From IMG/VR virus record IMGVR_UViG_3300037116_000299, positions 150,301 through 214,300 of that record: 64,000 bases of DNA; one strand, given 5' to 3'. Both the position numbers and the translations under genes were made by a program. The notes below the pieces were generated by a model. It made no database searches and was not told where the DNA came from. It saw nothing but the letters and a program-made list of their open reading frames with translations. Shown here piece after piece: positions 2,218 to 61,378 of the stretch (position 1 is the stretch's first letter; each line of letters opens with the position of its first letter).

Positions 2218-2418
2218 GTGCCGCAGATCGTGATTACCCAGGGTCAGGCGTACCTGAAGGGAAACGGTCTGCGGTGCATGGCTCCCCGCTATGACGACGC
2301 CACCTGCAAGTGCAACACGCTGGTGGTGAAGAAGAACTCGGCCGGTGAACTATCCGGGGCCTTCCAATGCCCCGAACGCCGCTGCCGCCAACACATCGAG
2401 GTTGAGGTTCGGCCCTAA
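2218..2418 (+). CDS. small Com-like zinc-finger protein
   Basis: GGAG precedes GTG at 2218; RC...CKCNTLVV...FQCPERRC resembles the Mu Com pattern (RC..CNKLL...IKCPRC). Confidence 0.45.
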   Translation: MPQIVITQGQAYLKGNGLRCMAPRYDDATCKCNTLVVKKNSAGELSGAFQCPERRCRQHIEVEVRP

Positions 2419-2503
2419 ACCGAACCCCTTCGTGAATCCAGCTCCACAAGAACACCCGCACGGTCCCGCGCGGACCAGCTCGCCCCAGGAGGGTATTTTC
2501 ACC

Positions 2504-3832
2504 ATGGCAAAGAATAAGCAGACACCGGAAGAGTTCCAGGCCGAGCTGAAGCTTCAGGACCGGTTCGCGACCATTTTCCGCAGCAATGGGTACGATCCCG
2601 AGACCGGCGACCCGATGGATATCAAGGACGCTCTGGATGTTCAGAACGCGGCCTTCATGATCCCCCGCGCGCTGACTCAGATCGTGCAGGAAGGCATCGA
2701 GCCGATGCTCATCGGCACGAACCTGCTCCAGAAGGTCCAGTACAAGCCTGGAATGACGACCGTATTCCCCGCCATCGAGCCGCTTCGCGCGGACGAAGCC
2801 GGCGACGGAATGGATCTGCCGATCTACAACATCAACATCGGTGGAGCACAGTCGTTCGGTGTGACGGTCAAGCGGCACGGTCTGCGTCTCAAGATCGCCA
2901 AGCGCTTCGTCGACGAGTCCAGCTACCCCTGGATCAACTTCTGGCTGCGCCTGGCCGGCAACGCTCTCGCCCGCCACAAGGAAGAGTACATCTTCGACTT
3001 CATCACGCGCCTCGGCACGGTTGTCTTCGACAACGACGTCAACGCACGTATGACGTCCAACACCGTCGGCCAGCCCATCAAGGGCGTCACCACGGGTCGC
3101 GACTACAAGGGCAAGCTGAACGGCTCCATGACGGTCGACGACATCTTCGATATGTACGCGGCTGTTCTCTTGAACGGTTTCGTGCCCGACACGATGCTGG
3201 TCCATCCAATGGCGTGGCTCATGTGGGTAAAGGATCCCGTGATCCGCGAGTTCGCGATCCAGGCGGGCGGCGGAAGCTTCTTCGCTCAGTGGACCGGAAA
3301 CCCGGCTGTCCAGGGCAACAAGTTCTACAACAACGGCGGCCTCGGCCTCGGTACCGGCCAGACCGGCCAGTACACCAACGGTCAGCTGACCGGTGGGGAA
3401 GTCTCCAACGCCACGTCCGGCAACTACCAGAACATGAGTTCGGCACCGCAGCTCCCCGGTTACCTCGGCCTGCCCTTCCGCATCCTGGTCTCGCCGTTCG
3501 TCAAGTTCGACCCCGAGGATCGCACGACCGACATCCTGATGTTCAACAGCCGCAACCTCGGCGCCTTGATCGTGGCTGAAGAGCCCCATGTCAAGAGCTG
3601 GGAAGATGGCCAGTTCAACATCCAGAACATGTCGATCGAAGAGACCTACGGCTTCGGCATCCTCAACGAAGGCCAGGCGATCGCGGTTGCCCGCAACATC
3701 AAGGTCCGCCCGAACGAGTTCACCATGCCGGCGCGCACCGTGTTCAACCTGTCGGAGGCGAACAACACCTTCACCGATCTGGCAACGGCAGCGATCTTCG
3801 ATGCGGCGAACCCGCTCAACGTCAACGCCTAA
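2504..3832 (+). CDS. major capsid protein (442 aa)
   Basis: GGAGG upstream of ATG 2504 (ORF-track start 2345 is probably too early); size, strongly biased codon usage, position in head module and a downstream terminator-like hairpin fit an abundant capsid protein. Confidence 0.7.
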   Translation: MAKNKQTPEEFQAELKLQDRFATIFRSNGYDPETGDPMDIKDALDVQNAAFMIPRALTQIVQEGIEPMLIGTNLLQKVQYKPGMTTVFPAIEPLRADEAGDGMDLPIYNINIGGAQSFGVTVKRHGLRLKIAKRFVDESSYPWINFWLRLAGNALARHKEEYIFDFITRLGTVVFDNDVNARMTSNTVGQPIKGVTTGRDYKGKLNGSMTVDDIFDMYAAVLLNGFVPDTMLVHPMAWLMWVKDPVIREFAIQAGGGSFFAQWTGNPAVQGNKFYNNGGLGLGTGQTGQYTNGQLTGGEVSNATSGNYQNMSSAPQLPGYLGLPFRILVSPFVKFDPEDRTTDILMFNSRNLGALIVAEEPHVKSWEDGQFNIQNMSIEETYGFGILNEGQAIAVARNIKVRPNEFTMPARTVFNLSEANNTFTDLATAAIFDAANPLNVNA

Positions 3833-3967: not shown

Positions 3968-4621
3968 ATGTCCAATTTGATCGTGATGCCTGGTTCGAAA
4001 GAGTTCAACGAGACTCTCGCCACCAAGACATCTCCCGCCAAACGCCGCACCGCCCCGAAGATGCCCGAGGACCTGACTGGCAAGACGCTGATGTTGAACA
4101 CAGCGGTGATCCAGCAGTTCCAATGCGGTGGCTTCCACCTGGGCTCCCGCCATCCCTTTGCCATCGTGGGCCCGCAGGCCCAGCAGGCGCCGCTGCACAT
4201 CGCCCTGGCTGCCGGCAACCTCATCGACATGACCGGCAAGGACATGACCAAGGGCTACAAGGGCAAGGGCGGCGAGACTTCCGCGATCGCCGAGGAAGAT
4301 ACCGGCAAGCAGGTCTTCATCGCCACCGACGGCCGCGGCAACCTTTACATCGCCGCGCCCAAGTCGAAGGCGGAAGGCAAGCGCTTTGAGAAGGAGATCC
4401 GCAGGACCGGGACCCTCAAGAGCGTGAACTTCGACGAGCATGTCACTGGCTTCGCTGGTGGCATCACCGAGGAAGTCGTCGAGAGCAGCCTGCCCGCCAA
4501 GAAGCCCACCAGGAAGCCCACCAAGAAACCGGCGCAGAAGAAGCCAGCCACCAAGCCGAGCAAGACGAAGGCAAAGAAGAATGTCAGCTCCAGTAGTCGT
4601 AAGCGTAGACCCGGGAAATAG
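3968..4621 (+). CDS. hypothetical protein with Lys/Pro-rich basic C-terminal tail
   Basis: GGAGG SD then ATG 3968; C-terminus PAKKPTRKPTKKPAQKKPATKPSKTKAKK resembles histone-like basic tails. Confidence 0.6.
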   Translation: MSNLIVMPGSKEFNETLATKTSPAKRRTAPKMPEDLTGKTLMLNTAVIQQFQCGGFHLGSRHPFAIVGPQAQQAPLHIALAAGNLIDMTGKDMTKGYKGKGGETSAIAEEDTGKQVFIATDGRGNLYIAAPKSKAEGKRFEKEIRRTGTLKSVNFDEHVTGFAGGITEEVVESSLPAKKPTRKPTKKPAQKKPATKPSKTKAKKNVSSSSRKRRPGK

Positions 4622-5282
4622 CGAGACCGACGTCGTTCTGGGTCAGGCCCTCATCGTCACCTTTGACCAGGTGATCGATCCGACCACTCTGAACGACAGC
4701 ACCTTTTCGCTGACCTACCCCGCATCGATCCAGGTGGTCAATGCGTCGCAGCTCATCTCAGGCAAGCCGGAGTCCTCGACGGTTGCCGTCGACGGCACCT
4801 GGTCCCTCGCCACGGTGGCGGGCGCTACCGTCGCCACCTTCCAGCCCACCCGCGGGTTCCAGCAGAACACCCCGTATACCGCGATGCTGTTGGGCGCCGA
4901 CGCTTCCCTCTCCACTGAGGATCTCAAGAACCTCGCGGGCGAGTCGATGGCGGTCAGCTACCAGTGGACCTTCACGACGGGCGTGCTCGATCTGCTGATC
5001 CCACCGTCCACTTCTCCCCTGGTCGACGACAACCGCGCGATCCAGTTGGACCAGATCCGCATCGTTCCCCGCATTCGCCTGAACCAGGATCTCACCCAGG
5101 AGTTCGATGTCATCTTCCCAGGTGATATCGATCCGACATCCTTCGACGTCAGCGATATCTATCTGAGCGTCGAGGCCATCCTGGGCAATCCCCTCATCCC
5201 CGGGCCGCCGCCGAATCTCGAGTACAGCGCGACGGTCGACGGCAACAAGCTGCGCATCCGGGTCACCGGCTGGCCAGCCTAA
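4581..5282 (+). CDS. Ig-like (SbsA/Big_5-type) domain virion protein
   Basis: ATG 4581; VVSVDP...IVTFDQVIDPTTL...ATFQP......NTPYT...LKNLAG...YQWTFTTG is the typical Big_5/SbsA Ig pattern. Confidence 0.65.
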   Translation: MSAPVVVSVDPGNSETDVVLGQALIVTFDQVIDPTTLNDSTFSLTYPASIQVVNASQLISGKPESSTVAVDGTWSLATVAGATVATFQPTRGFQQNTPYTAMLLGADASLSTEDLKNLAGESMAVSYQWTFTTGVLDLLIPPSTSPLVDDNRAIQLDQIRIVPRIRLNQDLTQEFDVIFPGDIDPTSFDVSDIYLSVEAILGNPLIPGPPPNLEYSATVDGNKLRIRVTGWPA

Positions 5283-5290
5283 GGAGCTTC

Positions 5291-5734
5291 ATGCAACTGA
5301 CAGAACACTTCGCCGATCGTGAACTTGGAGTTGCCGGCGAGATCGATCCTCGGATCTATGCCAATGCGGTCTTCCTGTGCAAGGAAGTCCTCGAACCCAT
5401 CCACGCCAAGTTCGGCGCCGTCCGGATCCATGACGGTTACCGCGATCCAGGCCACAACGCCCGGGTAGGCGGCAAGACAGCATCCTTCCATCTCTTCGTC
5501 GGCGGCGACGCCGCAGCCGACGTGGATGCGCAGGGCACCACGATCCAGATCCTCTTCGATTGGCTGCGCCTGGAGTCAGACCTGCCCTTCGACAAGGTCA
5601 TCCTCGAGAAGAACGCAGCCGAAGTCCCCGCCTGCGTTCACATCCAGATCGACCGCCTCAACAAACCCCGCCGCCAGGCCTTCATCGGCCACACCGGCAA
5701 CTCTCTCCGCTATGACCAGGTAGAGGTTCGCTAA
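5291..5734 (+). CDS. peptidase M15A-family endolysin (Zn D-Ala-D-Ala peptidase fold)
   Basis: DGYR...HNARVGG..ASFH...AAD...VHI motifs match M15A; AAGGAG SD. Confidence 0.8.
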   Translation: MQLTEHFADRELGVAGEIDPRIYANAVFLCKEVLEPIHAKFGAVRIHDGYRDPGHNARVGGKTASFHLFVGGDAAADVDAQGTTIQILFDWLRLESDLPFDKVILEKNAAEVPACVHIQIDRLNKPRRQAFIGHTGNSLRYDQVEVR

Positions 5735-6814: not shown

Positions 6815-7177
6815 ATGACTTTCTCTCTGAAACCGTTCAAGTCCATTGGCCATTTCTTCGCAACCGCGATCAAGGCCCTCGCCCAAAAGGGTCCTGCCGA
6901 AATCGACAAGCTCGAAGCGACCAAGACCGTTGTCGAAAAGGTCACAACCGCCGCCTCCGCAGTCCTCGGGATCGGCACTGTTGCTACGAGCATCGAAGAT
7001 CTGGGCTATGCCCTGCTCGGCGAGTTCGCCAAGGTCCTCACCCTGGGTGATGCGGCTGCTCAGGCCAAGTTGGCTGATGCAGGCGTCGACATCGCTGTGA
7101 TCAACGAAGTGAAGACCTTCGTGAACCAGTCCCAGGCGCTCAGCTCCGCGCTGCCGGCCCTCATCGCAGGCAAGTAA
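6815..7177 (+). CDS. hypothetical amphipathic helical protein (120 aa)
   Basis: AAGGAG SD, ATG 6815, phage-like codon usage. Confidence 0.6.
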   Translation: MTFSLKPFKSIGHFFATAIKALAQKGPAEIDKLEATKTVVEKVTTAASAVLGIGTVATSIEDLGYALLGEFAKVLTLGDAAAQAKLADAGVDIAVINEVKTFVNQSQALSSALPALIAGK

Positions 7178-7194
7178 GCACACGTTCCAACCGG

Positions 7195-7225
7195 AGGGGC
7201 GGCCGCACTGGCCGCCCTTTCTTCC
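7195..7225 (+). terminator. rho-independent terminator
   Basis: AGGGGCGGCC-gcact-GGCCGCCCTT followed by TCTTCC. Confidence 0.65.
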
Positions 7226-7243
7226 GTGACACTCGGAGACCTC

Positions 7244-7888
7244 ATGCTTTATCCCGGCGACATCCGCACCTTCCTGCTTTCCCTTTCGCATACCGACGGA
7301 TCCGCCCCTACCGTCACCACTGCCCCGCTGATCACGGTGATTCGTCTCATCGACGGCGTGTCGGTGACGACTGCTCAGGCAATGGTGCTGGTGACCGGAA
7401 CCTCGCTCGTCTATGCCTATCCCTGGAACACCGCCGGGTTGGCAAATGGTGATTACCTGGCCGTGGTCTCCTACGCCGCTGACGGCGCGACCATCAATGG
7501 CAGGTTCCTCGAGAACGTGCGCCTAGGCGATACCCGCGTCACCGGACTGGTTGCGCTGGACTCAACCGTCGCTCACGACGCCACGGTGGCTAAGGACGCA
7601 ACCGTTGCGCACCTGGCGGACCTGGCGACGATCAATCCCAGCACTTCGGCAGCGGTCCTCGCCATCAAGGCCAAGACCGACACATTGCCCACCAACCCCG
7701 CCAGTCAGGACTCTCTCCTGGCTCTGACGCAGCTGATCACCGACGTTCACGACGTCTCGCTGGGCACATGGGTGGTGGATAAAACGCAGAACCCGAAGGT
7801 CCTGACCTTCCGCCGCCTGGATGGTTCCGTCCTGGCCAACTTCCAGATTACTGAAGACACCAACTCAGCCACCCGCACTGTCCGCTAA
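7244..7888 (+). CDS. virion structural protein, fibre/whisker attachment candidate
   Basis: GGAG then ATG 7244; Thr/Val-rich beta-type composition; translationally coupled to collagen-like gene. Confidence 0.5.
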
Positions 7889-8490
7889 TGAGTCAGAGCA
7901 CAGACCTTACGCGTTACTACACCCGCCCTCAGGTCGACGCAAAGCTTGCTGGCCTAATCGGTGGAACCGGCCCTACCGGACCTACCGGTACGGCCGGCGT
8001 TACTGGTGCTGCCAGCACAGTTCCTGGACCAACTGGTCCCACCGGATCTGCCAGCACAGTTCCTGGACCCACCGGAGCAACTGGGGCCAACAGCACGGTA
8101 GCAGGTCCTACTGGGCCGACGGGTTTGACCGGATCTACTGGAGCAGCCGGCGCCGCGGCGCCGCTCTCCATCGGATTCATCATCAATATCGGCACTGCTG
8201 GAACGAATGTGGGGCCAATGCTGCCCGCCACTCGCGTGGCAGGTTTTACTAAATGTGTCGTCACTGTGAAGTTCTCGGATACGGTTACTGCTCTTTCCTT
8301 CCGAATCAAGCAGAACGGAACGAGTGTCTTCACAACTAACCCGACCATAGCAGCTGGCACCTCTTCAGGCACTGTGTCCACATTTACAGCGCTCACCTCG
8401 AGTCCACTGACCGTTGCTGCGAACGATCTGTTCACCATCGACATCCTGACTGGCACCGCCAACTGGCAATTCACCGCAGTGATGGAGTAA
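7888..8490 (+). CDS. collagen-like (GPT-repeat) fibre protein
   Basis: [26 protein letters not shown]... G-x-T repeats followed by a globular C-terminal domain; 22-bp DNA repeat at 8009-8030 and 8048-8069. Confidence 0.8.
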
Positions 8491-8497
8491 TCCGCAA

Positions 8498-9661
8498 ATG
8501 GCAGCATCCCTCAGCTATCTCCTCAATGACAGCTCTACCTTCGCTAACTACTTCGCGTGGGCGAGTTCTTTCGCCACAGCATTTATCGCGGCAGGTTCTT
8601 GGGTGCAATCACCCGATACTGGCCAGGTGATGTGGTCCGGGTTGAGCATCACAGCCGTGAGCATGTCCGGCACAACGATGACCTGCACCTATTCTTCTCA
8701 GACAGGTCTCGCCCTGGCTGTTGGCCGTGCTTTGACCGTCACCGGATGGACGTCCGGCAACGTCGGCAACAACGGCACCTTCGTCATCACCGGCGGAACT
8801 CTTACCGCGGGCAGCGGAACCTTCACTGCGACCAATGCTGCAGGAGTCACCGTGGCTTCGGGAGGTACTGGGGTAGTCACCGCCCAGGCGACCGCTCCTG
8901 GCACGAACGTGTACTTCTATGAAATCTGGCAGCCAAACGATGGTCTGACGAACTTCTACCTGAAGATGGAGTACGGGAGCTATTCCTCCGGTACCAATGC
9001 ACCTACCATAGCGGCCACCATCGGGGGAGCCACAAATGGAGCTGGAATCATTGTTGGTCTTGCCACAGGTCGATTCGTTGGTTCAGTGGTCACGAACACC
9101 GCTGCTTCTTCCACCATCCCCTATGAGTGCCGATTCTCAGGCGGAGCTGGGTACTTCGGAGCCATGCTATGGAGAGGCATCAACAATGGTCAGTTGGTGT
9201 ATGTGGAGCGTTCGGTCAACTCTTCGGGTGCCTACACTAGCTCCCATGTGACTCTGGTAGTCATTGGTGCAGCCGCAGGGACTCAAGCATGTTCGGCCAA
9301 TCAGCAGACGTACACGCTTGGCGGTCTTGGCCCTGCTCCACAGGTGTGTTCATCTTCGAACACGAACAACATCAACTATATTGGCCTGTCCATCCGCAAT
9401 GCTAACCCCCGAACCTCTCTTGTGTTCAACAACAGCGTGCCATTCGATACATTGGCCCCCGTTGTTGGCTACTACGACTATCCGCTACTTGGACTCGGGG
9501 GTACTAACTACCTCAACGTCACTGAAGGCCAAATCCTAGTGACCCCTGTGTATGGAACGAACCACACCTACATCTGCACTCAGGCGTACCCCTTTTCTTT
9601 TGCGTTTGTAGGCGCGGGTTCAAGCAGTGCCGGTCAGTCTCTTGCTATGAGGTACGAATAA
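8498..9661 (+). CDS. Ser/Thr/Gly-rich virion fibre/adhesin-like protein, paralog A
   Basis: 387 aa; aligns end to end with 9662-10810 (YLLND.STFAN, TGQVMW.GL, YEIWQPND.LTNF.LK, YFGA.LWRG.N.GQLVY.ERSVNSSG, ending MRYE). Confidence 0.65.
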   Translation: MAASLSYLLNDSSTFANYFAWASSFATAFIAAGSWVQSPDTGQVMWSGLSITAVSMSGTTMTCTYSSQTGLALAVGRALTVTGWTSGNVGNNGTFVITGGTLTAGSGTFTATNAAGVTVASGGTGVVTAQATAPGTNVYFYEIWQPNDGLTNFYLKMEYGSYSSGTNAPTIAATIGGATNGAGIIVGLATGRFVGSVVTNTAASSTIPYECRFSGGAGYFGAMLWRGINNGQLVYVERSVNSSGAYTSSHVTLVVIGAAAGTQACSANQQTYTLGGLGPAPQVCSSSNTNNINYIGLSIRNANPRTSLVFNNSVPFDTLAPVVGYYDYPLLGLGGTNYLNVTEGQILVTPVYGTNHTYICTQAYPFSFAFVGAGSSSAGQSLAMRYE

Positions 9662-10810
9662 ATGACCGCTAACCTTGTGTACCTCTTGAACGACGCTTCC
9701 ACGTTCGCCAACTTCTCCCAGTGGGCATCGCAGATTAGCGTCCAGCTTCAGCTCGCCGGATGGATTCAAAGCAACGACACAGGACAAGTCATGTGGACGG
9801 GCTTGACCATCAGTGCTGTGACCTGCACCGGAACCACATCAGTCTATACATACGCCTCGCTCACAGGTCTGCCGCTTGCGAATGGTCGTGCCTTGAACAT
9901 CACAGGCATGGGCAATTCGGTCAACAACGGAACGTTTGTCATCACGTCGTTCACCGGCACGACCTCGGGCACCTTCACCGTGACCAACTCAGCCAGTGGC
10001 ACTACGGCTTCCGGTCAGTCGGGTGTGGTCACAGCGAACACCGTTGTTCCTGCCACCAACGCCACGGTTTATGAAATCTGGCAACCCAATGACTCGTTGA
10101 CCAACTTCTTCCTCAAGATACAGTATGGGAACAGTCAGGCCGCGAATGCCCCGGTTCTAGTTGCTCAACTCAGCACCACCACCAATGGGGCTGGGGTACC
10201 CACAGGCTACGTTACCTCCCAATTTGTAGCGTGTGTGGGCGCACCCACCGCCCAGAGTGCCACGGTGCCCTGGGAGTGCCGCTTCTCTGGAGGACCCAGC
10301 TACTTCGGGGCTCTGATGTGGAGAGGAGTAAACACCGGTCAGTTGGTGTACATCGAACGCAGCGTGAACTCCAGCGGTGTCTACACCAACACGCACGTCA
10401 CCTTGGTGGTCATCGGGGACACTAACGGAGGCGGAGTCGTCACGGTTGCTAACCAGCAGACTCTGTACCTACAGAGCGGACTCGGGGCTTGCCCTGTAGT
10501 GTGCTCATCCACGAACTCAAACGCTTACGGCGGTTTGACTATCTCTGTGCCTAACCCTACCTCCAGAGGCAACCAAGCCTTCAACGGCACCGTGCCTGTG
10601 GACTTCATCTCTCCAGTGGTTGGGCTCCTCGATTACCCCCTTTATGGATTGGCGGGGACGAACTATCTGGCGGTGTCAGAAGGTCAGATTCTAACGGTAT
10701 CGGTGTACGGCTCTAACCACACCTACTTCGCCACTCAGGCTACACCTTTCTCTCAAGCGTTTCAGGGTTCAAGTGCCGCAGGTAACGCCCTCCTCATGAG
10801 GTACGAATAA
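9662..10810 (+). CDS. Ser/Thr/Gly-rich virion fibre/adhesin-like protein, paralog B
   Basis: 382-aa tandem paralog of 8498-9661; both genes end ATGAGGTACGAATAA. Confidence 0.65.
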   Translation: MTANLVYLLNDASTFANFSQWASQISVQLQLAGWIQSNDTGQVMWTGLTISAVTCTGTTSVYTYASLTGLPLANGRALNITGMGNSVNNGTFVITSFTGTTSGTFTVTNSASGTTASGQSGVVTANTVVPATNATVYEIWQPNDSLTNFFLKIQYGNSQAANAPVLVAQLSTTTNGAGVPTGYVTSQFVACVGAPTAQSATVPWECRFSGGPSYFGALMWRGVNTGQLVYIERSVNSSGVYTNTHVTLVVIGDTNGGGVVTVANQQTLYLQSGLGACPVVCSSTNSNAYGGLTISVPNPTSRGNQAFNGTVPVDFISPVVGLLDYPLYGLAGTNYLAVSEGQILTVSVYGSNHTYFATQATPFSQAFQGSSAAGNALLMRYE

Positions 10811-12570
10811 TGCCCCTGATGGCGCCCACGCCCATTGCGATGGCGAATCGTGGTAACACGGTCACCAACAGCAACACCGTTGCGGCTACGACACTCACCA
10901 TGTCTATCGCCAACAACAGTGTGGGTGTGAACGGGGGCAACTCCGTGGGCGGAAATGTATTGATGGTAGCGGCTATCGCTATCTACACGGCCAGTGTGAC
11001 GGTCTCCTCCATCACCCCCGGAGCGAACCTCTTCACCGGATGGACATTTCAAGGAGCAAGCACCGAACCCGGCTCAGGCGTCCGCATTGAACTGTGGACG
11101 ACGCCTTGTGTCCTCGGGGCTGGAACAGCCAACTCGACCATCAACTTCAGTTCAGCCGCTCTGGCCTCTGTGTCCGTGACCAGCTACACGGAACCTTACG
11201 ACTACCCCTCGTCGCCTCTGGTGAACAGCGGTTTGTACAACAACACCAACGGCATCACCACCGGTGTTCACGTTGAGACCATCTCTCCCGCAGCCTTCAC
11301 AGCGGGAAACCTGATTATCATGAGTATGCAAGCGACTCCGACCCCCACCAGCGTCACGGACAGTGTAGGTACCACATACACTTTGGTCAACACCGGTTCC
11401 TACAATGCCTATGGTGCTAACCTCTACGTCGCCGTGTTCGCCGGTATCGCCGCAGGTTCCTCCGCGTCTCCCACGGTGACGATGCACTTCGGGGCCAGCA
11501 GTGGTGTCTATCGCTACTACGTGAGCCAGTGGGCCGGGGTCACCGCAACGGTGGACACAACGAACGCTGTAGGAGTCCCGTCTCTTGGCGGGGCTGCGAT
11601 GAACACTATCAACGTCACCACGACCAATGCCAATGACCTCATTCACACCGTGCTTGCCATGTATGGTGGGAACCCGACCGTGTTGAGTCAATATCCGGGC
11701 AACGGCGTCATTGGTAGTTTTGAAGGCGCCAGAATTGTAAACAGTACGGGAACCTACCCGACCTACTGGACAAACAACAACTCAAGTATGGCGGTCACCA
11801 CCGCGTTCAAGGTATCTCCGACGTACACTCCGACCGCCGCGCCAACACCGCGTGTCGTAACGGCTCACAGTGCTGCAAGCACTGGTTTTTATGCTGAACT
11901 GGACAACACCCCCCAGTACGGGGGAAACATGATGGTCACCGCGTATGCGGTGGCTACCAACTCAGGAGATACATTCGCGGGTGCGGTTGGTACGCTTCGA
12001 ACTTCGGTGACACCTACGGTGACATCCGCTGCTGCTGTCCTCATGGAGAATGGGCCAACTAGCACCATCGCCAGTATGCGTACTCAGTTGAGGATGTCGT
12101 CCCAACGGGCATGGGCTGCTATCAGCTTTGAACTGGTGGCCGCTAACGGCACCTACACGCTGAATGCCAACCCGCTCGTTCAGTCCAACCACATAGGTCA
12201 ATCTGAAACGGCCAAGTACCAAGTGAAGTCCACCGACATAATCGAGAAGTACATGGTTCCGTCTCAGAATGGAAGTAGCTCCGGACTCTATCTGTTTGCT
12301 CAGGCTCTCGCCAGCGCTACCCTTGGCATTGCGTACTCAGAAACGATCTTTGCTACCGGAGGTTCCAGCCCCTATGCACTCACGGTTCTGTCCGGGACTC
12401 TGCCTCCTGGTCTGTCCTTGAACTCAGGCACTGGTGTGATTTCCGGTACACCTACAACGGCAGGTACGTACGGTTTCACGCTCAAGGCAATTGACTCGCT
12501 GCGCAACACTACGACTTGCACGTTCCAGATCCTGACGATTGCATCGACCAACAGCGGATTCGTGAACTAA
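10810..12570 (+). CDS. Ser/Thr-rich protein with C-terminal putative Ig (He_PIG-like) domain
   Basis: C-terminus ATLGIAYSETIFATGGSSPY...GTLPPGLSLNSGTGVISGTPTTAGTYGFTLKAIDS is the He_PIG/cadherin-like pattern. Confidence 0.7.
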   Translation: MPLMAPTPIAMANRGNTVTNSNTVAATTLTMSIANNSVGVNGGNSVGGNVLMVAAIAIYTASVTVSSITPGANLFTGWTFQGASTEPGSGVRIELWTTPCVLGAGTANSTINFSSAALASVSVTSYTEPYDYPSSPLVNSGLYNNTNGITTGVHVETISPAAFTAGNLIIMSMQATPTPTSVTDSVGTTYTLVNTGSYNAYGANLYVAVFAGIAAGSSASPTVTMHFGASSGVYRYYVSQWAGVTATVDTTNAVGVPSLGGAAMNTINVTTTNANDLIHTVLAMYGGNPTVLSQYPGNGVIGSFEGARIVNSTGTYPTYWTNNNSSMAVTTAFKVSPTYTPTAAPTPRVVTAHSAASTGFYAELDNTPQYGGNMMVTAYAVATNSGDTFAGAVGTLRTSVTPTVTSAAAVLMENGPTSTIASMRTQLRMSSQRAWAAISFELVAANGTYTLNANPLVQSNHIGQSETAKYQVKSTDIIEKYMVPSQNGSSSGLYLFAQALASATLGIAYSETIFATGGSSPYALTVLSGTLPPGLSLNSGTGVISGTPTTAGTYGFTLKAIDSLRNTTTCTFQILTIASTNSGFVN

Positions 12571-13640
12571 GCCACTTGGATCTTGGTCTTGAGGACCGCG
12601 ATCCAAGGCTGCATCCATCCCGTATCGCGCGAGTTCCGTTCGATCGCGGCCAGCGTCCTGTCCGCGAGTCCGATCCTTCCGGTTTGAATCGCAGCAAAGG
12701 CAAACTCGTACGGCATTAGGTGCTGGTAGATGGTGGCATCGATGAACAACCGATCTTCCTTCGGATAGGGGAAGTCGTGGCCCCAGACCGAAGCATAGAA
12801 GAATGCCATCCGCGGCTCATCGATCGCCCGGTAATGCTGGACGATTTCATAGATCGGCTCAATGCGCGTCGGCCGATATTGGTAAGCCTTGAGGAATAGG
12901 GGCAGCACGGTCGCCTCCCAATCCTCTCCCAGGCGCATGGCCATCCGGCCCTTCTGATACATGGCGTACCAGCGTTCCTCGTCGAAGCCTTCAAGCAGCA
13001 CGCGTCGCCCATACCAGTATTCGGCGGGCCCATAGTGGCCGAAGTCCTTGTAGGACTGGGCCAGATAGAAGAGGCTCCGCGGATTGGTCGGATCTTCGAT
13101 CACAGCCTTGGTCAACAGGCAGATGTCGCGTTCGAACTTGTCCGTACGCATTGCTCCATCCGCCAGGTGAGTCAGGCTGATGTCGTGGATCTGCTCAAAG
13201 CGCAGCGCCGTCGGCGACGTGATGTATTCGTGGGTGACCCCGACATAGTTCCACTCGTGGCGCGACGACACCAGCATGGTCTGGGTGTAGTCGAGCGACC
13301 CTTCGTAGCGCAACTCATACGCATCCGCGGTCAGCTTTTCCTTGAATGGAGCCCGAACATTCAACACCATGTCCGCATCCATGATCAGCATGTAATCAGT
13401 CTTCGCCCGAGCGAGCCGTACGAGTTGCGTGCGATTGGCCCCGAAATTCACCCATGGGACTTCAATCAGATCCCCCGGCAGGCTCCCCAGTACGTCGAGC
13501 ACGATCGCCTGGGTGCCATCTGTCGACCCTGTGTCGCAAACGATCCAGGAATCGATCCATGGCTTCGCGGACTCTAGGGCGCGCCGAACGACTGCGCTCT
13601 CATTCTTCACCATCATGGCCAGGCAAACAGTTGGTTTCAT
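12567..13640 (-). CDS. GT2 glycosyltransferase with TPR repeats
   Basis: N-terminal CLAMMVKNE, DTGSTDGT, NFGANR, DAD motif, GVTHEY; then TPR-like repeats (RSLFYLAQSYKD, WYAMYQKG). Only antisense gene in the structural block. Confidence 0.85.
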   Translation of the reverse strand: MKPTVCLAMMVKNESAVVRRALESAKPWIDSWIVCDTGSTDGTQAIVLDVLGSLPGDLIEVPWVNFGANRTQLVRLARAKTDYMLIMDADMVLNVRAPFKEKLTADAYELRYEGSLDYTQTMLVSSRHEWNYVGVTHEYITSPTALRFEQIHDISLTHLADGAMRTDKFERDICLLTKAVIEDPTNPRSLFYLAQSYKDFGHYGPAEYWYGRRVLLEGFDEERWYAMYQKGRMAMRLGEDWEATVLPLFLKAYQYRPTRIEPIYEIVQHYRAIDEPRMAFFYASVWGHDFPYPKEDRLFIDATIYQHLMPYEFAFAAIQTGRIGLADRTLAAIERNSRDTGWMQPWIAVLKTKIQVA

Positions 13641-13689
13641 ATCGCCATCATTCCATTGGCGAAAGTAGGTACCAAAGACTAGACCCGCC

Positions 13690-13710
13690 GTCTTCCTATA
13701 CTAGATAGCT
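13690..13710 (+). promoter_or_regulatory. conserved motif copy 1 (GTCTTCCTATACTAGATAGCT), putative late promoter
   Basis: Intergenic, about 50 bp before ATG 13759; core TTCCTATACTAGAYAG recurs at 15956 and 39981. Confidence 0.6.
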
Positions 13711-13758
13711 CCAGGAGCCTTTTATTGCGGCTCTACTCCGACAACAGGATGTCCAACC

Positions 13759-14043
13759 ATGAGTCTTTCGTCCTCAGATGAGAAGGAAATGCTTCTCAAA
13801 GTACGAGACATCCATGCCGTATTCATCGGCATCGAGGGTCAACCAGGGCGCTTTGCCACCCTTTCCAACACCGTAGAAGGACACGGCCGCCAGCTCGGCA
13901 GGCTTCAGAAGTTCCAGTGGGCGTTGACCGGTATGGGCGTCGTCATTGGCTATCTCTTCTATCATCTGGCCGGAGTTCTCGGCGCGGTTGACGCGCTGAA
14001 GAAGATCTCCTTCGTTCACACCGTCTTCCTTTCCAGGACCTAA
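13759..14043 (+). CDS. small membrane protein (XhlA/holin-like architecture)
   Basis: Short coiled coil followed by a hydrophobic segment (WALTGMGVVIGYLFYHLAGVLGAV). Confidence 0.5.
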   Translation: MSLSSSDEKEMLLKVRDIHAVFIGIEGQPGRFATLSNTVEGHGRQLGRLQKFQWALTGMGVVIGYLFYHLAGVLGAVDALKKISFVHTVFLSRT

Positions 14044-14589
14044 ATGGCGACTGTTGGCCAATCCCGGTTGATTCAGTTCTGGATCGCCGATGTTGCCAGT
14101 GTTCCGATCACCACCTGCACGCTGTCCAGTTTCGCCATCTCCTTTACGCGGGATGGCGCAGCCTGTGCTGATGGTCTGAGCCTTGTAAACAATGGTGCCG
14201 GCAGTTACTGCCTGCAGTACACCCCAACGGCCGCCGGTCGCGATGCGGTGACGATCGATGATACTGTCAACGATCTCTACTACTGCGACATCGAGCCCAT
14301 TGTGTTGGTTGGGTCAGATGGTCTGGACCTCGTGACCGTGACCCAGGACTACGGCGGAGTGGGCGCGCTCCTGCCAAGCGCTCCGCAGCTTGCGACGTTT
14401 ACCCTCTACGCCTACTTCTATTCCGACTGGTCGGTGGGCAACAACGACCCGTCCTACGCCCTGGCTTCTTATCAACTCGATAGTTCCGGTGCCTGGAGCC
14501 TGACGCTTGTTCCCGGCACCTACACTCTGGTGCTCACGAACAACATCGGAACCACGATCGTCTTTCAGCCAAGTCTGGTGGTCGCCTAA
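14044..14589 (+). CDS. hypothetical virion protein
   Basis: 181 aa, beta-rich composition, coupled to neighbours. Confidence 0.55.
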   Translation: MATVGQSRLIQFWIADVASVPITTCTLSSFAISFTRDGAACADGLSLVNNGAGSYCLQYTPTAAGRDAVTIDDTVNDLYYCDIEPIVLVGSDGLDLVTVTQDYGGVGALLPSAPQLATFTLYAYFYSDWSVGNNDPSYALASYQLDSSGAWSLTLVPGTYTLVLTNNIGTTIVFQPSLVVA

Positions 14590-14592
14590 GTC

Positions 14593-15330
14593 ATGCAGAG
14601 CAATCTCGTATTCCACATCGCGATCCCGCGCGGGCTCAAACTGAAGAACGGCGCGACACTGATGAAGGACGTCACCTTCGACCTCATCAGTCAGCTCACT
14701 CCGTTTTACTCGAGTGTGGACCTGGTGCGCCTGGGCGGCGGACCTGCGATCGCCAAGCTCTCCGACATCACCCTGGCTTGCCAGATCTTCCAGGCCAGTC
14801 TGAAAGCAGACCTGATCTCACCCAACCATCATCCCTGGTTCGGGCCGCAGTTCAAACGTTTCCTTGGCGCCCGGATGCAGTGGACCACAGCAGTCGCCAC
14901 CCGCGACCTGATGCTGAACATCGTTTCCCTGCTGGGCCCGAGCGCGCACGTGTTGGCCAACTTCTCCGCCGATCGCAAGACCGACCTCAAACAGCCCCTG
15001 TCCCAGATCGCCGGCGACATCAAGAGCTACGAGGTTGCGGTCCGCAGCGGCGGCCGTACAGTTCCGGGCGGCCGGCCCACCTTCCACTTTGCTGCCAAGG
15101 GAGTCATGGACTGGGGCGAACGCACCCCCGGGCGATCCTGGAGCGGGAACGGTATGGGTGCAAACGCCACCTCGATTGATCCCGGGTCCGCCACCGGCGG
15201 CCGCGGCAAGCCGGTCAAGTTCTTCGCATCCCCCATCTGCTCGCCGCCCTTCTCCGCGATGCGGTCTGGCATCTACCAGCCGGGCTATCCTCTGGCTCCA
15301 ACGTCGATGTCCTCGTCGGGGTACTACTAA
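14593..15330 (+). CDS. putative head-tail adaptor / neck protein
   Basis: 245 aa; called from position upstream of head-closure, terminator and sheath genes. Confidence 0.4.
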   Translation: MQSNLVFHIAIPRGLKLKNGATLMKDVTFDLISQLTPFYSSVDLVRLGGGPAIAKLSDITLACQIFQASLKADLISPNHHPWFGPQFKRFLGARMQWTTAVATRDLMLNIVSLLGPSAHVLANFSADRKTDLKQPLSQIAGDIKSYEVAVRSGGRTVPGGRPTFHFAAKGVMDWGERTPGRSWSGNGMGANATSIDPGSATGGRGKPVKFFASPICSPPFSAMRSGIYQPGYPLAPTSMSSSGYY

Positions 15331-15332
15331 GC

Positions 15333-15914
15333 ATGGATTTCTACGGCAACATGAGCATGGTCCCGGACATCCGGGAAGAGCTGCACGCAGTCATTCACGG
15401 CCGGGCGGATGTTACACCCCAGGGCCGCGGAGTTGTCCTGCGCCGGCTCAGCAATACACCGTGCGCCTGCTGGGACCCGGTCACAGGCGGCAGCAAGCGC
15501 CCCAACTGCCCGTACTGCAAGGGTGAGGGTTGGCAGTTCATCGAGACCCAGGAAACGATGGCGATCTACCGCGGCGTCGCCCCGGTCTATAAGCCGGGTG
15601 TGCTGGCCACCGGCCAGTATCCCCAGGCGGGTATGGGCTATACCGATACCAACCGCGCAACCGCCTACGTCGAGTTCTTCCGCACAGACGGCAGCGAGGT
15701 CTATCCGAACTACGAACGCTACACGCTGCAGGAGGCCAAGGCCTACGACAAGCTCTACGAGCTGAAGGTCGACCACGAAGGCGAGCTGGTCATCGATCTC
15801 ACCGGACACTTCGTCCGGACGGTCAAATGGAAGGTCCTGTCGGTGGTTCCCACGCACGGAGATCACGGTCGAATCGAGTTCTTCGAGCTTGGCCTCGAGA
15901 AGGAGAACGCCTAA
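15333..15914 (+). CDS. putative head closure/completion protein with Zn-ribbon insert
   Basis: PCACWD...CPYCKGEGW motif; position in neck module. Confidence 0.5.
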   Translation: MDFYGNMSMVPDIREELHAVIHGRADVTPQGRGVVLRRLSNTPCACWDPVTGGSKRPNCPYCKGEGWQFIETQETMAIYRGVAPVYKPGVLATGQYPQAGMGYTDTNRATAYVEFFRTDGSEVYPNYERYTLQEAKAYDKLYELKVDHEGELVIDLTGHFVRTVKWKVLSVVPTHGDHGRIEFFELGLEKENA

Positions 15915-16730: not shown

Positions 16731-18578
16731 ATGTACAACAATCTGCCTGGGATTCTGGTCAACACCGTTGATGGCGGCCTCGCCGTTCAGCGGCAGCCGG
16801 TGGCCGACTCCACTCTTGTCATCAGCACGTCCGGCCAGGGCGTCGCCAACCAGCCTTACCAGGTTGTCGATCGCACCAAAGCGGCTCTCGAATTCGGACT
16901 GCAGGGCAACCTGATCCGGGGCATGGAAGAGGCTGCATCGAATTCCGACAACCTGATCCTGTTCCGCATGGGTACCGCTCCGATGACCCTCACTGGCATC
17001 GGCGCAGATTCCACCCCGGGCGCTTTGACTGCAGGCTTCGGTTTGGAGTTCGGCCAGGTTCAGGCCACCGCCGCGACCGACTACAAGGTCTGGTACAAGG
17101 CCGGTGTGCTCGCCGTTTACTTCGGCGAGGCTCTGATCTATTCCAACGACCCGCTGCAGACGACCGACAACGGCGACCTCACCATCGACGGCTTGATCGC
17201 CGGCAATGCAGGTCTGCAGATCGGTACCGGAGCCAGCGCGACCCTCGCCAATGCCATCACGGTTCAGGCCGCAGCGGCTCTGGCAGGCGTAGCCCATCAG
17301 GCGGCTCCGACGCTGACCGCGTGCGTAACCGGCCTCGGCCTCACCGGCCGCCAGCAGTTCGTCGCCTTGCTCAAGGCGCTCGACTTGCTCCAGGGCTTCC
17401 AGGTCAAACAGATTGTGGTTCCGGAGGCGCTCTTCAATGCGCCGAACGTGGCCTTCTATGTCGCAGGCGACGCTACCACGTCCCTCAACAACCCGGTCAC
17501 CAACCCGAGTGCGCTCGACTGGCTCAAAACCTCAGCCGATGCGTATGGCAACCTCACGTTCCAGTGGGCGTCCGAGACAACGGACTCGAACGGAACAGCG
17601 GTTGCTGCCTTCGCCGGTGTGACCCTTGCGTCGCGCAAGGCCGCGGGCTTCTCCGAAGTCAACTGGGGCTACACCCTCGCCAACTTCTGCGCGTCGGTGA
17701 GCATGCTCGGCAACGAGTGCATTGGCTTCATCGGCACGACTGGCCCTGCTTCCTACAAGCTGGTCGATGTGCGCAAGTGGGTGGGTTACCTGCCCAAGTA
17801 CGACGCCAACGGAGTTGTGACCACGGCCGGTGCAGGCCTGCTCGGCATCGCCTACACGGCGGGCACGGACACCGCGCATCTGAATCCCCTGTGTGTCGAC
17901 TTTGCTTCCGGTTCGCGCAAGCCTGGCTTCTTCCAGACGGCGAGCGGACAGTACGATGATGCCGCGGAACAGGACATCAACCAGAATCCGATCGACATCG
18001 GCGCCTACCTGCATGTGGTTGCAGACCAGGCCATTCTTTCGAATGGCTTTGCCACCAACTATGTCAGCAACATCGCGACGTTCGTTGCCGGTATCTGCGG
18101 CATGCTCGACGAGAAGCGCGCACTGACCAACCTGTCGGTCTCCGGCATTCAGCAGCTGCCGGGCCTGACCTACACACCCGGCCAGCTCGATGCGCTCACC
18201 CAGGTCAACATCAACGTGCTCAAGACCAAGACCACCGGTCCGGCGCTGTTGCATGACAAGACCTGCGCCACCGATGCCAGCGACTACACCCAGGTGCTGC
18301 GCGTCCGCATCAAGGGCCTGGTGGTTGCCACCATGCTTGCGATCGGCGACCCCTTCGTGGGAGCCAGCTCGCTCGACGGTCTCCAGCTCACCTCGCTGAA
18401 GACGGCGTTGGACACCGGACTCTCCGAACTGTCCAAGCGTGGCTACATCAACAGCCCCAGCGTGGTCATCAAGACCACAGCGGCTGAACAGCGCATCGGT
18501 CACGCCGACCTGTTCCTGAAGTTCCACCCGGCCGACCAGATGGTGCAGCTCAACGCCTATGTGGGCCTGACCCGCTAA
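16731..18578 (+). CDS. contractile tail sheath protein (615 aa)
   Basis: N-terminal LPGILVN, C-terminal sheath-like region (LTQVNINVL...QVLRVRI...IGDPFVG...ADLFLKFHPA..MVQLNAYV); followed by a tube gene. Confidence 0.8.
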   Translation: MYNNLPGILVNTVDGGLAVQRQPVADSTLVISTSGQGVANQPYQVVDRTKAALEFGLQGNLIRGMEEAASNSDNLILFRMGTAPMTLTGIGADSTPGALTAGFGLEFGQVQATAATDYKVWYKAGVLAVYFGEALIYSNDPLQTTDNGDLTIDGLIAGNAGLQIGTGASATLANAITVQAAAALAGVAHQAAPTLTACVTGLGLTGRQQFVALLKALDLLQGFQVKQIVVPEALFNAPNVAFYVAGDATTSLNNPVTNPSALDWLKTSADAYGNLTFQWASETTDSNGTAVAAFAGVTLASRKAAGFSEVNWGYTLANFCASVSMLGNECIGFIGTTGPASYKLVDVRKWVGYLPKYDANGVVTTAGAGLLGIAYTAGTDTAHLNPLCVDFASGSRKPGFFQTASGQYDDAAEQDINQNPIDIGAYLHVVADQAILSNGFATNYVSNIATFVAGICGMLDEKRALTNLSVSGIQQLPGLTYTPGQLDALTQVNINVLKTKTTGPALLHDKTCATDASDYTQVLRVRIKGLVVATMLAIGDPFVGASSLDGLQLTSLKTALDTGLSELSKRGYINSPSVVIKTTAAEQRIGHADLFLKFHPADQMVQLNAYVGLTR

Positions 18579-18687
18579 GTAGTCCCTCCCTCCGCCGGCA
18601 AACCTGCCGCGGCTCAGCTCCCGTGAGGTCGCCCGATCTCCGGGAGCTGCGAATCCCTTCTGACTTCATCCTTCCAAGGAGTTCTCC

Positions 18688-19386
18688 ATGTCCAGTGCTC
18701 TCGGCGGTGTACTCGCCAGCGAAATCAGCCGTTCCTACAATTCGTTCGCAGGTTCGGACATCAAGGCGGTAATTGGCCAGTTCCAGTTCGCCGAGCTGCA
18801 GGCGATCAGCTACTCCATCACCCGCGAGAAGGCCCCGGTCTACACCCTGGGCAGCGCCGATGTGCGCGCCTACTCGCGCAACAAGCGCGGCATTGCCGGC
18901 TCCCTCATCTGGATCAACTTCGATCGCCACGCTCTGTTGAATCTCATTCAGCAGGCCGCCGGCACCTTCGTCGCCGATGCAGACGAGATTCGCCCGCAGT
19001 ACACCGACGTGTCCAACGGCTCCGCGGTCTTCCAGTCCTCGGTCATTCGTGACATGGGCCCCTCGATCAGTTCCACGATCAATGCTCTCGATCAGCAGAC
19101 CATCAACACGGTCGGCGCGACCAATGAGCTGGCGACCCCGTGGTATTCGGATCAGATTCTGCCGTTCGATGTAACGCTCGCTGGCGCAAATGAGTACGGC
19201 GCCATGTGTGCGGCCAAGATCTTCGGCCTCGAAATCCTCAACGAGGGTTCCGGGATCTCGATCGACGATGCGGTTACCGAGATGCAGGCGACCTTCGTTG
19301 CCCGTGTGGTCGAACCGATGGCCGCCGTGTCCAGTCCGTTCCAGCCGTCCACCGGCATTGGCGGTTCGGCTCTGACGCGCGCGTAA
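18688..19386 (+). CDS. tail tube protein
   Basis: SFAGSDIKAV...LQAISYSITREKAPVYTLG...RGIAGSLI tube-fold pattern directly after sheath; AAGGAG SD. Confidence 0.75.
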   Translation: MSSALGGVLASEISRSYNSFAGSDIKAVIGQFQFAELQAISYSITREKAPVYTLGSADVRAYSRNKRGIAGSLIWINFDRHALLNLIQQAAGTFVADADEIRPQYTDVSNGSAVFQSSVIRDMGPSISSTINALDQQTINTVGATNELATPWYSDQILPFDVTLAGANEYGAMCAAKIFGLEILNEGSGISIDDAVTEMQATFVARVVEPMAAVSSPFQPSTGIGGSALTRA

Positions 19387-19407
19387 TCGTTTCTCCTCAA
19401 TCTCCAT

Positions 19408-19470
19408 ACGGGCAGTTTCAGCCTTTGGCTCTTTGTTCCTTTCTGCCATGCTGAAGCTGCCCGTTTCTTT
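19408..19470 (+). terminator. long hairpin / terminator after tail tube gene
   Basis: ACGGGCAGTTTCAGC ... GCTGAAGCTGCCCGT stem followed by TTCTTT. Confidence 0.6.
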
Positions 19471-19475
19471 ATTCC

Positions 19476-29171: not shown

Positions 29172-29329
29172 ACCTTTGATAGATGCGGCGGAACAGCGAT
29201 GCTGTTCTAGCCACCAAGGCTCCCACCGGGCGGACGAGTAACTCACCTGGACTTCCGCGATAGCACCCTGCCGTCCTCACCTGTGCTCCCCACCTCGCTC
29301 GGAAGCGTCCGCCCACCCCTCTCCCTCCC

Positions 29330-34279: not shown

Positions 34280-34282
34280 ACC

Positions 34283-60040: not shown

Positions 60041-60229
60041 GTGAAAGTGAAAGAGATCGAAACCGAGCAGAACGACATCATGGATGCGAGTGAACTGGCG
60101 GCTCTTCTGCGTGTCAATGTAGTAACTGTCCGCCTCAAGGCTTCAGCGGGTGTGATTCCAGGCCGGCAAATCGGAAACCGCTGGCGCTTCAGCCGCACAC
60201 GGATCATTCAGTGGATGGAGTCCGCTTGA
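60041..60229 (+). CDS. excisionase-like helix-turn-helix protein (HTH_17/MerR-like)
   Basis: MDASELAALLRVNVVTVR......IPGRQIGNRWRFSR..I..WM; strong GAGGAGGAGG SD; adjacent to integrase. Confidence 0.8.
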   Translation: MKVKEIETEQNDIMDASELAALLRVNVVTVRLKASAGVIPGRQIGNRWRFSRTRIIQWMESA

Positions 60230-61334: not shown

Positions 61335-61378
61335 GACTTCTTTCCGAACCCCCGTATGCAATATCAGGAAGTATACCT

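Follow-up and report, generated by a model that had tools for sequence, protein, structure and literature searches.

A GT2-TPR glycosyltransferase gene linked to a collagen-like fibre stalk in a provirus of Acidobacteriota points to virion fibre glycosylation

Introduction

The closest characterised system for the locus described here, judged by architecture, size, gene linkage and acceptor motif, appears to be the SgtA/BclA3 pair of Clostridioides difficile. SgtA is an enzyme of 358 amino acids (aa) with a GT-A glycosyltransferase domain and four tetratricopeptide repeats (TPR), and its gene lies beside bclA3; it adds beta-O-linked N-acetylglucosamine (GlcNAc) to Thr, and also to Ser, of G-P-T repeats and prefers Mn2+ (PMC7157674). 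In the literature searched, this work was the only paper that tied a GT2-TPR enzyme to a collagen-like protein. Here we analysed a stretch of 64,000 nucleotides (nt) from the virus record IMGVR_UViG_3300037116_000299 (positions 150,301 to 214,300), called the window below and used for all coordinates. It forms the final 64 kb of an IMG/VR provirus of 214.3 kb, whose completeness is 99% (CheckV). The window encodes a glycosyltransferase (GT) of 357 aa, GT357 (12567-13640, minus strand), and a collagen-like fibre protein, col200 (7888-8490, plus strand). An earlier reading made from the letters alone (the original prediction) had proposed that this phage O-glycosylates its fibres. The comparative evidence given below suggests that GT357 O-glycosylates the G-x-T stalk of col200 much as SgtA modifies BclA3, and we give this reading a probability of roughly 0.68.

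GmaR, the flagellin O-GlcNAc transferase of Listeria monocytogenes, is a GT2 enzyme with TPR repeats whose O-glycosylation target is a surface protein that forms filaments; it is larger, bifunctional and also serves as the MogR anti-repressor. Among phages, several GTs reportedly glycosylate the C-terminal extensions of capsid and tail-tube proteins in actinobacteriophages of clusters such as F and O. GTs encoded among the structural genes of actinobacteriophages (mycobacteriophages) modify virion proteins, as cited in PMC11256854 and other papers. In phage JBD30, the similar-fold proteins gp47 and gp48 form heterodimers that stack into lateral tail fibres binding the pilus (PMC11445458), and virus-encoded glycosylation of virus-encoded collagen-like proteins is represented by mimivirus L230 (PMC4691112).

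GT357 and SgtA have nearly the same length (357 and 358 aa), an N-terminal GT-A domain, a C-terminal TPR domain and a metal/DxD dependence, and in each case the gene is linked to one that encodes a collagen-like surface protein with G-P-T repeats, here col200, 4 kb off in the same cassette. The present pair differs in being phage-borne and in having as its proposed substrate a virion fibre, where C. difficile has a filament of the spore coat; GT357 is convergent and three genes away, whereas sgtA is immediately upstream, and the collagen part of col200 is short and interrupted. The glycosyltransferases SunS and ThuS (PDB 7msn, 7msp, 7msk) likewise combine a GT-A domain with a helical TPR-like domain, glycosylate polypeptides and give the best two-domain fold match, whereas they share only 14-16% identity with GT357, which has a sub-equivalog score, and they modify Cys or Ser of a small helical peptide. 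No genes for a glycocin precursor, its export or its maturation were found near GT357, the neighbours being virion structural genes only. For GmaR, only the N-terminal nucleotide-binding part aligns to GT357. Unlike in actinobacteriophages, a single SgtA-like GT is here tied to a collagen-like fibre, and the host phylum is Acidobacteriota; the layout also differs, since GT357 adjoins the fibre cassette, away from the capsid gene at 2345-3832 and from the sheath and tube genes at 16731-20402. In giant viruses, many distant GT357 homologs in metagenome-assembled genomes (MAGs) adjoin G-x-T collagen genes, whereas mimivirus L230 is a hydroxylase-glucosyltransferase acting on hydroxylysine, of a different family and chemistry.

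Results and Discussion

GT357 is a predicted protein glycosyltransferase

The fibre genes and the antisense GT2-TPR gene were located at 7888-13640, where the original prediction had put them, by the map of open reading frames (ORFs), the Pfam GT2 match and an AlphaFold2 (AF2) model. Neither a non-standard genetic code nor a spliced model or broken toxin gene came into play. GT357 matched PF00535 (Glycos_transf_2) over residues 8-94 with 34 bits against a cut-off of 23.3 (E = 3.6e-8; 35.5 bits in the scan of the whole provirus), TPR_17 weakly, and phrog_13126 at 8.3e-24. Its family comprised 3832 proteins at E<=1e-5. The motifs D36-T-G-S-x-D41-x-T43, D88-A-D90, H137-E138 and D161-G162...R165...K168 were invariant in 26 homologs (down to 41% identity); GT357 carries all of them, and the enzyme is intact. 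The best sequence match among solved structures was GmaR (3.5e-8, first 96 residues), followed by ThuS (3.5e-5) and SunS.

The AF2 model had a predicted local distance difference test (pLDDT) score of 94. It consisted of a GT-A domain (about nt 13161-13640) and then ten helices forming an all-helical TPR-like domain (residues 166-356, about nt 12570-13145). The model aligned with SunS at Z 23.5 and a root-mean-square deviation (rmsd) of 2.5 Å over 263 residues, and with ThuS at Z 22.4 over 306 residues. Matches confined to the GT-A domain reached a Z of about 17, and those confined to the TPR domain about 15-16, including the TPR of human O-GlcNAc transferase; WrtF, TarS and TarP aligned to the GT-A half (Z 14-17, rmsd about 2.5 Å, about 155 residues). 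Against the SunS equivalog model TIGR04195, GT357 scored 28.6 bits where the cut-off is 350 and is not a member. Since the best matches among solved structures (GmaR, ThuS and SunS) all glycosylate polypeptides, GT357 is best placed in the class of protein or peptide GTs. No membrane segment was seen in the model, which is that of a soluble protein. From motifs and model, GT357 is predicted to be a cytoplasmic, metal-dependent (DxD) GT-A protein glycosyltransferase with a TPR substrate-binding domain. DNA glycosylation was considered as its function and dismissed, since both the fold class and the neighbouring genes suggest that the acceptor is a protein. A complex prediction of GT357 with residues 1-100 of col200 returned a score of 0.00, which is no answer and counts as evidence neither way.

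The GT accompanies stalks rich in Thr at the Y position

The Thr-rich G-P-T collagen protein of the original prediction was recovered as col200, in which Thr makes up 20% of the residues. The protein begins with a conserved N-terminal peptide, continues with an interrupted G-x-T stalk and closes with a C-terminal beta domain. In the collagen-like region (residues ~27-89, 7966-8154, plus strand), G-x-y runs of 6, 3, 3 and 6 triplets are separated by STVP/STVA breaks, and Thr occupies 11 of the 17 Y positions. col200 matched PHROG tail-fibre families down to 4.8e-10 and Pfam Collagen (PF01391) with 19.9 bits, the cut-off being 27.2 (E = 6.5e-4). This region is the sole PF01391-like locus of the 214-kb provirus; the Pfam scan counted one collagen-like locus and one GT2 gene in the whole element, about 4 kb apart, and a profile scan found no GT1 gene anywhere in the 214 kb. 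In relatives the same repeat motif reaches 39-46 triplets, and the motif common to the GT-bearing fibres can be written ([11 protein letters not shown]-ASTVx)n.

The slot between the genes p220 and p181 (window 7226-14589), compared across the syntenic relatives L174-L206, is a cassette-exchange hotspot with at least 8 different contents, among them an empty one. Four cassette types combined the GT with a collagen-like gene rich in Thr at Y (the fraction of Y positions with Thr is given as Y-Thr): the window type (window, L175, L177; Y-Thr 0.65), a 699-702-aa fibre (L004, L179; 0.64), a 586-aa fibre (L186; 0.74) and an 824-844-aa fibre (L007, L180; 0.74). The GT was absent from the col + p387 + p586 cassettes of L174 (0.07) and L199 (0.06), from the cassette with a 428-aa collagen-like protein (L203; 0.29) and from that with a 1039-aa collagen fibre (L206; 0.23). 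At least three more slot types had neither collagen nor GT, and no collagen-free slot had a GT. Counted by cassette type, the GT was present with 4/4 Thr-at-Y collagens vs 0/4 other collagens, or 0/7 when the collagen-free slots are added.

The other fibre genes did not follow this pattern. Genes like p387 and p586 of the window also occur in L174 and L199 (72-75% and 54-56% identity), whose stalks are built from G-P-P, G-T-P, G-T-N and G-A-P triplets. In L004, L186 and L007 the collagen gene directly adjoins the GT and p387/p586 are absent. Seven p387/p586-type cassettes (L172, L173, L174, L199, L090, L091 and one Joint Genome Institute (JGI) contig) had no GT within 7-9 kb; in L090, L091, L172, L173 and the JGI contig the p387-type genes are followed by He_PIG or discoidin proteins, with no collagen or GT gene within 7-9 kb. 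In these gene contents the GT tracks the G-x-T collagen-like stalk and not the three Ser/Thr-rich proteins p387, p382 and p586. The proposal that the phage O-glycosylates its fibres would thus be narrowed to the collagen stalk, for which comparative genomics and fold speak. The co-occurrence of GT and fibre genes in relatives, which the original prediction had named as a check, came out in the same way: the GT goes with the Thr-at-Y collagen gene and is independent of p387, p382 and p586. The independence from fibre genes that the original prediction had named as refuting was thus seen for these three genes but not for the collagen gene.

The pairing recurs in other viruses and in bacteria

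Tunturi_5 is a 309-kb jumbo myovirus that has been isolated and propagated lytically. Its collagen tail fibres gp28-gp29 contain 95 triplets with a Y-Thr of 0.61, and they are followed by four p387 paralogs (gp30-33) and a convergent GT, gp35, with 50% identity to GT357. The paper describing the Tunturi phages lists gp35 only as a moron/auxiliary metabolic gene (AMG) (PMC11924767).

Among more distant viral loci (33-41% identity, many of them giant-virus MAGs), 32/80 had a collagen ORF within their 8-kb flanks. After clustering at 90% identity, collagen was found in 29/67 clusters, within 3 kb in 24 of them; 20 of the 29 had the same downstream-convergent arrangement, and the median Y-Thr was 0.67. 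No collagen ORF occurred in 341 kb of unrelated phage loci used as control, a control that differs in virus type. Bacterial homolog loci from at least 8 phyla had a collagen-like ORF in 48/80 cases, nearly always within 1 kb, and the carriers include Streptomyces, Solirubrobacterales, Bacteroidota, Mesorhizobium, Erythrobacter and Acidobacteriota. In 20 of those bacterial genomes about 68 Pfam Collagen loci were present in 123 Mb (distinct places among the matches listed, counted by eye). Of the 20 GT loci, 10 had a collagen locus within 5 kb, compared with about 0.11 expected, and 2 of these 10 had been missed by the regular expression. Adjacent collagen-like genes are therefore in more than 50-fold excess. 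The first regular expression required at least 7 uninterrupted triplets, missed col200 and the L007 fibre and was later relaxed. Because even the relaxed criterion overlooked genuine collagen loci next to L144 and L136, the numbers of adjacent pairs given here are too low.

The bacterial neighbours vary in form. In the Streptomyces loci L119-L171 a collagen-like gene rich in G-P-T and G-P-K lies within 1 kb of, and divergent to, the GT2-TPR homolog. In L095-L101 (Bacteroidota and others) a collagen-like gene is again within 1 kb; that of Bacteroidota is co-directional and poor in Thr at Y. No characterisation of these bacterial collagen-like proteins was found in the literature searched.

Maximum-likelihood analysis placed the GTs of the provirus lineage in one clade (100/99), sister to Tunturi_5 gp35 (97/95). 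The provirus and Tunturi_5 GTs lie among bacterial sequences of mixed phyla, and most giant-virus sequences form a separate clade. The tree therefore indicates that the GT is a stably inherited gene of acidobacterial phages and not a recent one-off pick-up.

Proposed mechanism and its weighing against other explanations

From the observed gene anatomy, catalytic motifs, fold class and GT-collagen linkage, we infer substrate, residue, sugar and role as follows. GT357 would modify freshly synthesised col200 in the cytoplasm, either ahead of virion assembly or while it is under way. Its TPR domain would hold the extended repeat while a sugar is added to the Y-position Thr of G-x-T. The product would probably be a monosaccharide or a short glycan unless host enzymes extend it, because the provirus has only one GT. 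Glycosylated Thr at Y stabilises triple helices that are free of hydroxyproline, for example in the cuticle collagen of the tube worm Riftia. Most plausibly, the sugar would likewise stabilise or protect a collagen helix that lacks hydroxyproline, which would account for the Pro found at Y in GT-free forms of that stalk. The distal end of col200 would carry the p387/p382 pair and the Ig-tipped p586, giving an accessory fibre encoded between the head and neck genes.

The core of this proposal, that an SgtA-like GT2-TPR enzyme of a phage glycosylates virion fibre proteins, is well supported by gene neighbourhoods and predicted fold. Several observations weigh against it. GT357 was compared with SgtA at the level of architecture. 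It stands three genes from col200 as an antisense single-gene unit, a layout typical of morons. The collagen stretch of col200 is short, interrupted and below the Pfam cut-off, so that a true triple helix is not assured. Beside the closest bacterial homologs (50-53% identity; Bacteroidota, Elarobacter and Mesorhizobium) the collagen neighbours have a Y-Thr of only 0.05-0.15; Thr at Y is therefore not universal, and the acceptor rule may differ across the family. By regular expression, about 40% of the bacterial and about 60% of the viral loci have no collagen ORF in their flanks, and the loci share ancestry, so their counts overstate independence. The glycan itself is predicted from comparative genomics and fold.

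A moron function would fit the orientation of the gene and its database label. The original prediction had named, as its alternative, a lysogen-expressed moron that modifies host surface proteins. Such a GT would modify a host surface protein or polysaccharide, for instance as a block to superinfection, and its place beside the fibre genes would be incidental. GT357 is indeed the sole minus-strand gene in a plus-strand structural block of about 58 kb, forms a single-gene unit with a gap of 118 bp upstream, and belongs to an element with an integrase beside tRNA-Arg; PHROG and Phold class its family as 'moron, AMG, host takeover' (PMC11924767), and bacteria of the host phylum own GT-collagen pairs (L101, L117) that are possible targets. 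These points are countered by the tree, in which the GT is monophyletic, vertically kept and sister to that of a lytically propagated phage, and by the GT-collagen pairs in giant-virus MAGs, which have no lysogeny, and beside chromosomal collagen-like genes of many bacterial phyla. Moreover, the presence or absence of the GT in syntenic relatives matches the collagen chemistry of the phage itself exactly, the modelled enzyme is soluble, unlike the Gtr-type O-antigen converters, the promoter and terminator scan lent no support to an autonomous unit, and the metatranscriptome run that holds the GT holds structural genes too. On this evidence the moron explanation is disfavoured, and we consider it quite unlikely. 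The antisense, single-gene layout of GT357 fits a unit with its own timing.

The acceptor could also be wider than the stalk or of another kind. Glycosylation of Ser/Thr throughout col200, p387, p382 and p586 would suit the composition of these four proteins, which are rich in Ser and Thr (0.23-0.28) and extremely low in charge, and the use of Ser besides Thr in peptides by SgtA (PMC7157674); in Tunturi_5, too, p387 paralogs stand between the collagen gene and the GT. It is nevertheless unlikely in view of the seven p387/p586 contexts with equal Ser/Thr content (0.21-0.29) and no GT within 7-9 kb, of the GT-bearing L004, L186 and L007 that lack p387/p586, and of the p387 model, which is compact beta (pLDDT 90) and not the extended Ser/Thr linker that is usually O-glycosylated. 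We regard as very improbable an acceptor that is not a protein or is a small peptide (a polysaccharide, a teichoic-acid-like polymer, a lipid or a glycocin-type peptide). Sources annotate the family as 'glycosyltransferase involved in cell wall biosynthesis', and the closest folds, SunS and ThuS, act on small peptides, with TarS/TarP lower in the list. TarS/TarP, however, match only the generic GT-A half (Z 14-16), the SunS equivalog score lies far below its cut-off, no gene for a precursor peptide, an ABC (ATP-binding cassette) transporter or a thiol-disulfide enzyme is evident among the cassette ORFs, and the more than 50-fold excess of adjacent collagen-like genes would be left unexplained by any such acceptor.

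If the stalk of col200 is the substrate, this would be a second and mechanistically different phage virion glycosylation, outside the actinobacteriophages, in which a single SgtA-like enzyme is dedicated to a collagen-like fibre, and it would occur in phages of Acidobacteriota, a dominant yet poorly studied soil phylum. An annotation rule would follow, by which a GT2-TPR gene with an adjacent G-x-T collagen gene denotes a glycosylated collagen-like filament, and hundreds of genes of phages, giant viruses and bacteria that now count as 'moron/AMG glycosyltransferases' would be re-labelled. The glyco-Thr and the Pro-rich stalks on the same fibre would be a natural design pair for helix stability without hydroxyproline. 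The idea can be tested directly in Tunturi_5, whose host, Tunturiibacter psychrotolerans X4BP1, can be cultivated. As a tentative generalisation, about which we are more doubtful than convinced, the widespread GT2-TPR family may be a dedicated partner of prokaryotic and viral collagen-like proteins in which O-glycosylated Thr at Y replaces hydroxyproline. Phages, Streptomyces, Bacteroidota and giant viruses would be its users, and phage cassettes would switch between a 'glyco-Thr plus GT' stalk and a 'Pro-rich, GT-free' stalk, as between the window and L174/L199.

The junction of p586 and GT357 and its transcription

The genes p586 and GT357 converge and overlap by 4 nt at 12567-12570, as the original prediction had stated: the stop codon TAA of p586 occupies 12568-12570 and the TAG of GT357 12569-12567. 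The overlap is conserved in relatives and recurs in L004 (5458-5461) and L007 (9074-9077). With the stop codons interlocked, there is no room for a terminator between the p586 and GT357 units. Upstream of GT357, a divergent intergenic region of 118 bp (13641-13758) separates its start from the next plus-strand gene and presumably contains its own promoter. In a consensus scan of 7000-14700, promoter and terminator counts equalled those of shuffled sequences, no site was found near GT357, and no terminator-like site was found at 12567-12570. Short metatranscriptome contigs of 100% identity covered the fibre genes and the GT in one run and the fibre genes only in another; these contigs are without strand or level, DNA carry-over is possible, and they serve as a hint only.

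The fibre cassette

The fibre genes may together encode one composite fibre, in which an N-terminal anchor leads into a collagen stalk and a knob, followed by the p387/p382 pair and the Ig-tipped protein. Nothing lies between p220 and p181 in L178, L192, L195 and L201, and the fibre is therefore an accessory, swappable appendage and not the essential receptor-binding apparatus, which is encoded after the baseplate genes. The C-terminal domain of col200 (residues 93-200, 8164-8487, plus strand) has 81% identity in the GT-less L174 and 46% identity to the C-terminal end of a 936-aa protein from L090, an unrelated phage locus in which that protein is directly upstream of p387 paralogs. Because the same domain precedes p387 paralogs there, it is suggested to be a docking knob for p387-family proteins. 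The N-terminal peptide of col200 (MSQxTDLxxYYTRxQVDAK) is found in long-collagen relatives as an ORF of its own, 59 aa in length, which overlaps the beginning of the long collagen ORF (L007 11545-11724; L004 ~7674-7745), which could reflect a split gene, a frameshift or programmed recoding.

The fibre-forming protein p387 (8498-9661, plus strand) and its paralog p382 (9662-10810, plus strand; 57-58% identity) follow col200. The AF2 model of p387 (pLDDT 90) shows a well-folded, compact beta protein whose fold resembles that of JBD30 gp47/gp48. It aligned with chain K of 8rk3 at Z 16.4 and rmsd 4.0 Å over 258/317 residues (model range 2-387). Foldseek matched the JBD30 baseplate at E = 2.3e-4, including chain G (8rk3_G), the 8rk3 chains being assigned from chain length and from the remark in the paper that gp47 and gp48 share a fold, and a search of BFVD matched phage 'virion structural proteins'. 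The p387 family has 82 homologs and no Pfam family; its profile found nothing relevant among PDB sequences, so that the link to JBD30 is one of fold only. As in JBD30, two similar-fold paralogs stand side by side, and p387 matches chain K over its full length. They differ from the JBD30 proteins in having no detectable sequence similarity, in an extra beta-barrel insert (residues 46-129) and in their location: their genes follow that of a collagen stalk protein and stand between head and neck genes, in a provirus of the jumbo myovirus-like type, not in a siphovirus baseplate module. Pairs or quartets of p387-type paralogs recur in L172, L090 and Tunturi_5 (gp30-33), and p382 is likely the heterodimer partner of p387. 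From the likeness to gp47/gp48, the two proteins are taken to be virion fibre parts, which may build the fibre as a pair.

The distal fibre protein p586 (10810-12570, plus strand) carries a He_PIG Ig-like domain at its C-terminus (residues 499-574, nt 12304-12531; Pfam 3.6e-13). Its N-terminal ~495 aa have a phage-specific fold whose neighbours in the Atlas are all phage hypothetical proteins, the Atlas model being poor (pLDDT 0.65). Only 7 full-length homologs were found, each right after p387-family genes. The description of p387, p382 and p586 as very Ser/Thr-rich proved partly apt: their combined Ser and Thr content (0.23-0.26) exceeds that of most window proteins (about 0.10-0.17), but the description is overstated in comparison with other tail proteins of the window (0.21-0.24) and with the homologous GT-less cassettes (0.21-0.29). 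More striking is the very low share of charged residues in the cassette proteins, 5-7%, with 5-6% in p387, p382 and p586.

On the left, the slot is bordered by p220, a 220-aa structural protein (7226-7888, plus strand) for which Pfam and PHROG scans gave no match; its homologs (41-57% identity) precede the slot in all syntenic relatives, whatever cassette follows. p220 contains a short peptide repeated in tandem ([12 protein letters not shown]-like), and this repeat alone drew many unrelated phage contigs (L208-L240) into the metagenome scan. The right border is formed by the head-completion/neck genes p181, p245 and p193 (14044-15914, plus strand; PHROG 'virion structural protein'), whose homologs are downstream of the slot in all syntenic relatives, with the sheath gene next.

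The provirus, its host and surrounding genes

By gene order, established from Pfam and PHROG profile matches, the provirus is a myovirus-like element. Its capsid gene is followed by a Big_5 decoration gene (4440-5282) and an M15 lysin (5291-5734), and the tail sheath gene (16731-18578; PHROG tail sheath match) and baseplate J (41382-42593) lie beyond the fibre slot. A tyrosine integrase gene (60204-61361, minus strand) is directly beside tRNA-Arg(CCG), and the 214-kb provirus probably has its right attachment end in this region (60204-61507).

A copy of GT357 with 75% identity and the same neighbours was found in a Terracidiphilus MAG (L092), and the nearest isolated phage with related genes has the host Tunturiibacter; together they indicate that the host is an acidobacterium (Acidobacteriota). 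The region 7888-13640 had matches of ~100% identity in peat, soil and permafrost metagenomes from 19 studies and was also present in short contigs of two metatranscriptomes, which suggests that the phage is widespread, and possibly active, in peat Acidobacteriota.

Some further genes of the window deserve mention. Right after the sheath gene, a tandem paralog pair (18688-20402) matches phrog_9206 ('major head protein') and phrog_34314; by position these are more likely tail-tube proteins, and the PHROG head label looks misleading. Three giant ORFs of 1676, 1649 and 1896 aa are present in the tail module (23071-39973), of which only the last has a Pfam match, to an SLT transglycosylase. A gene for a ClpB-D2-like AAA+ ATPase (28101-29171), unusual inside a tail module, lies between the first two. 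The lysin slot after the Big_5 gene holds the M15 peptidase in the window and a GH108 lysozyme in syntenic relatives (L007 14810-15358; L174 2226-2744), and is thus a second swap site in the region.

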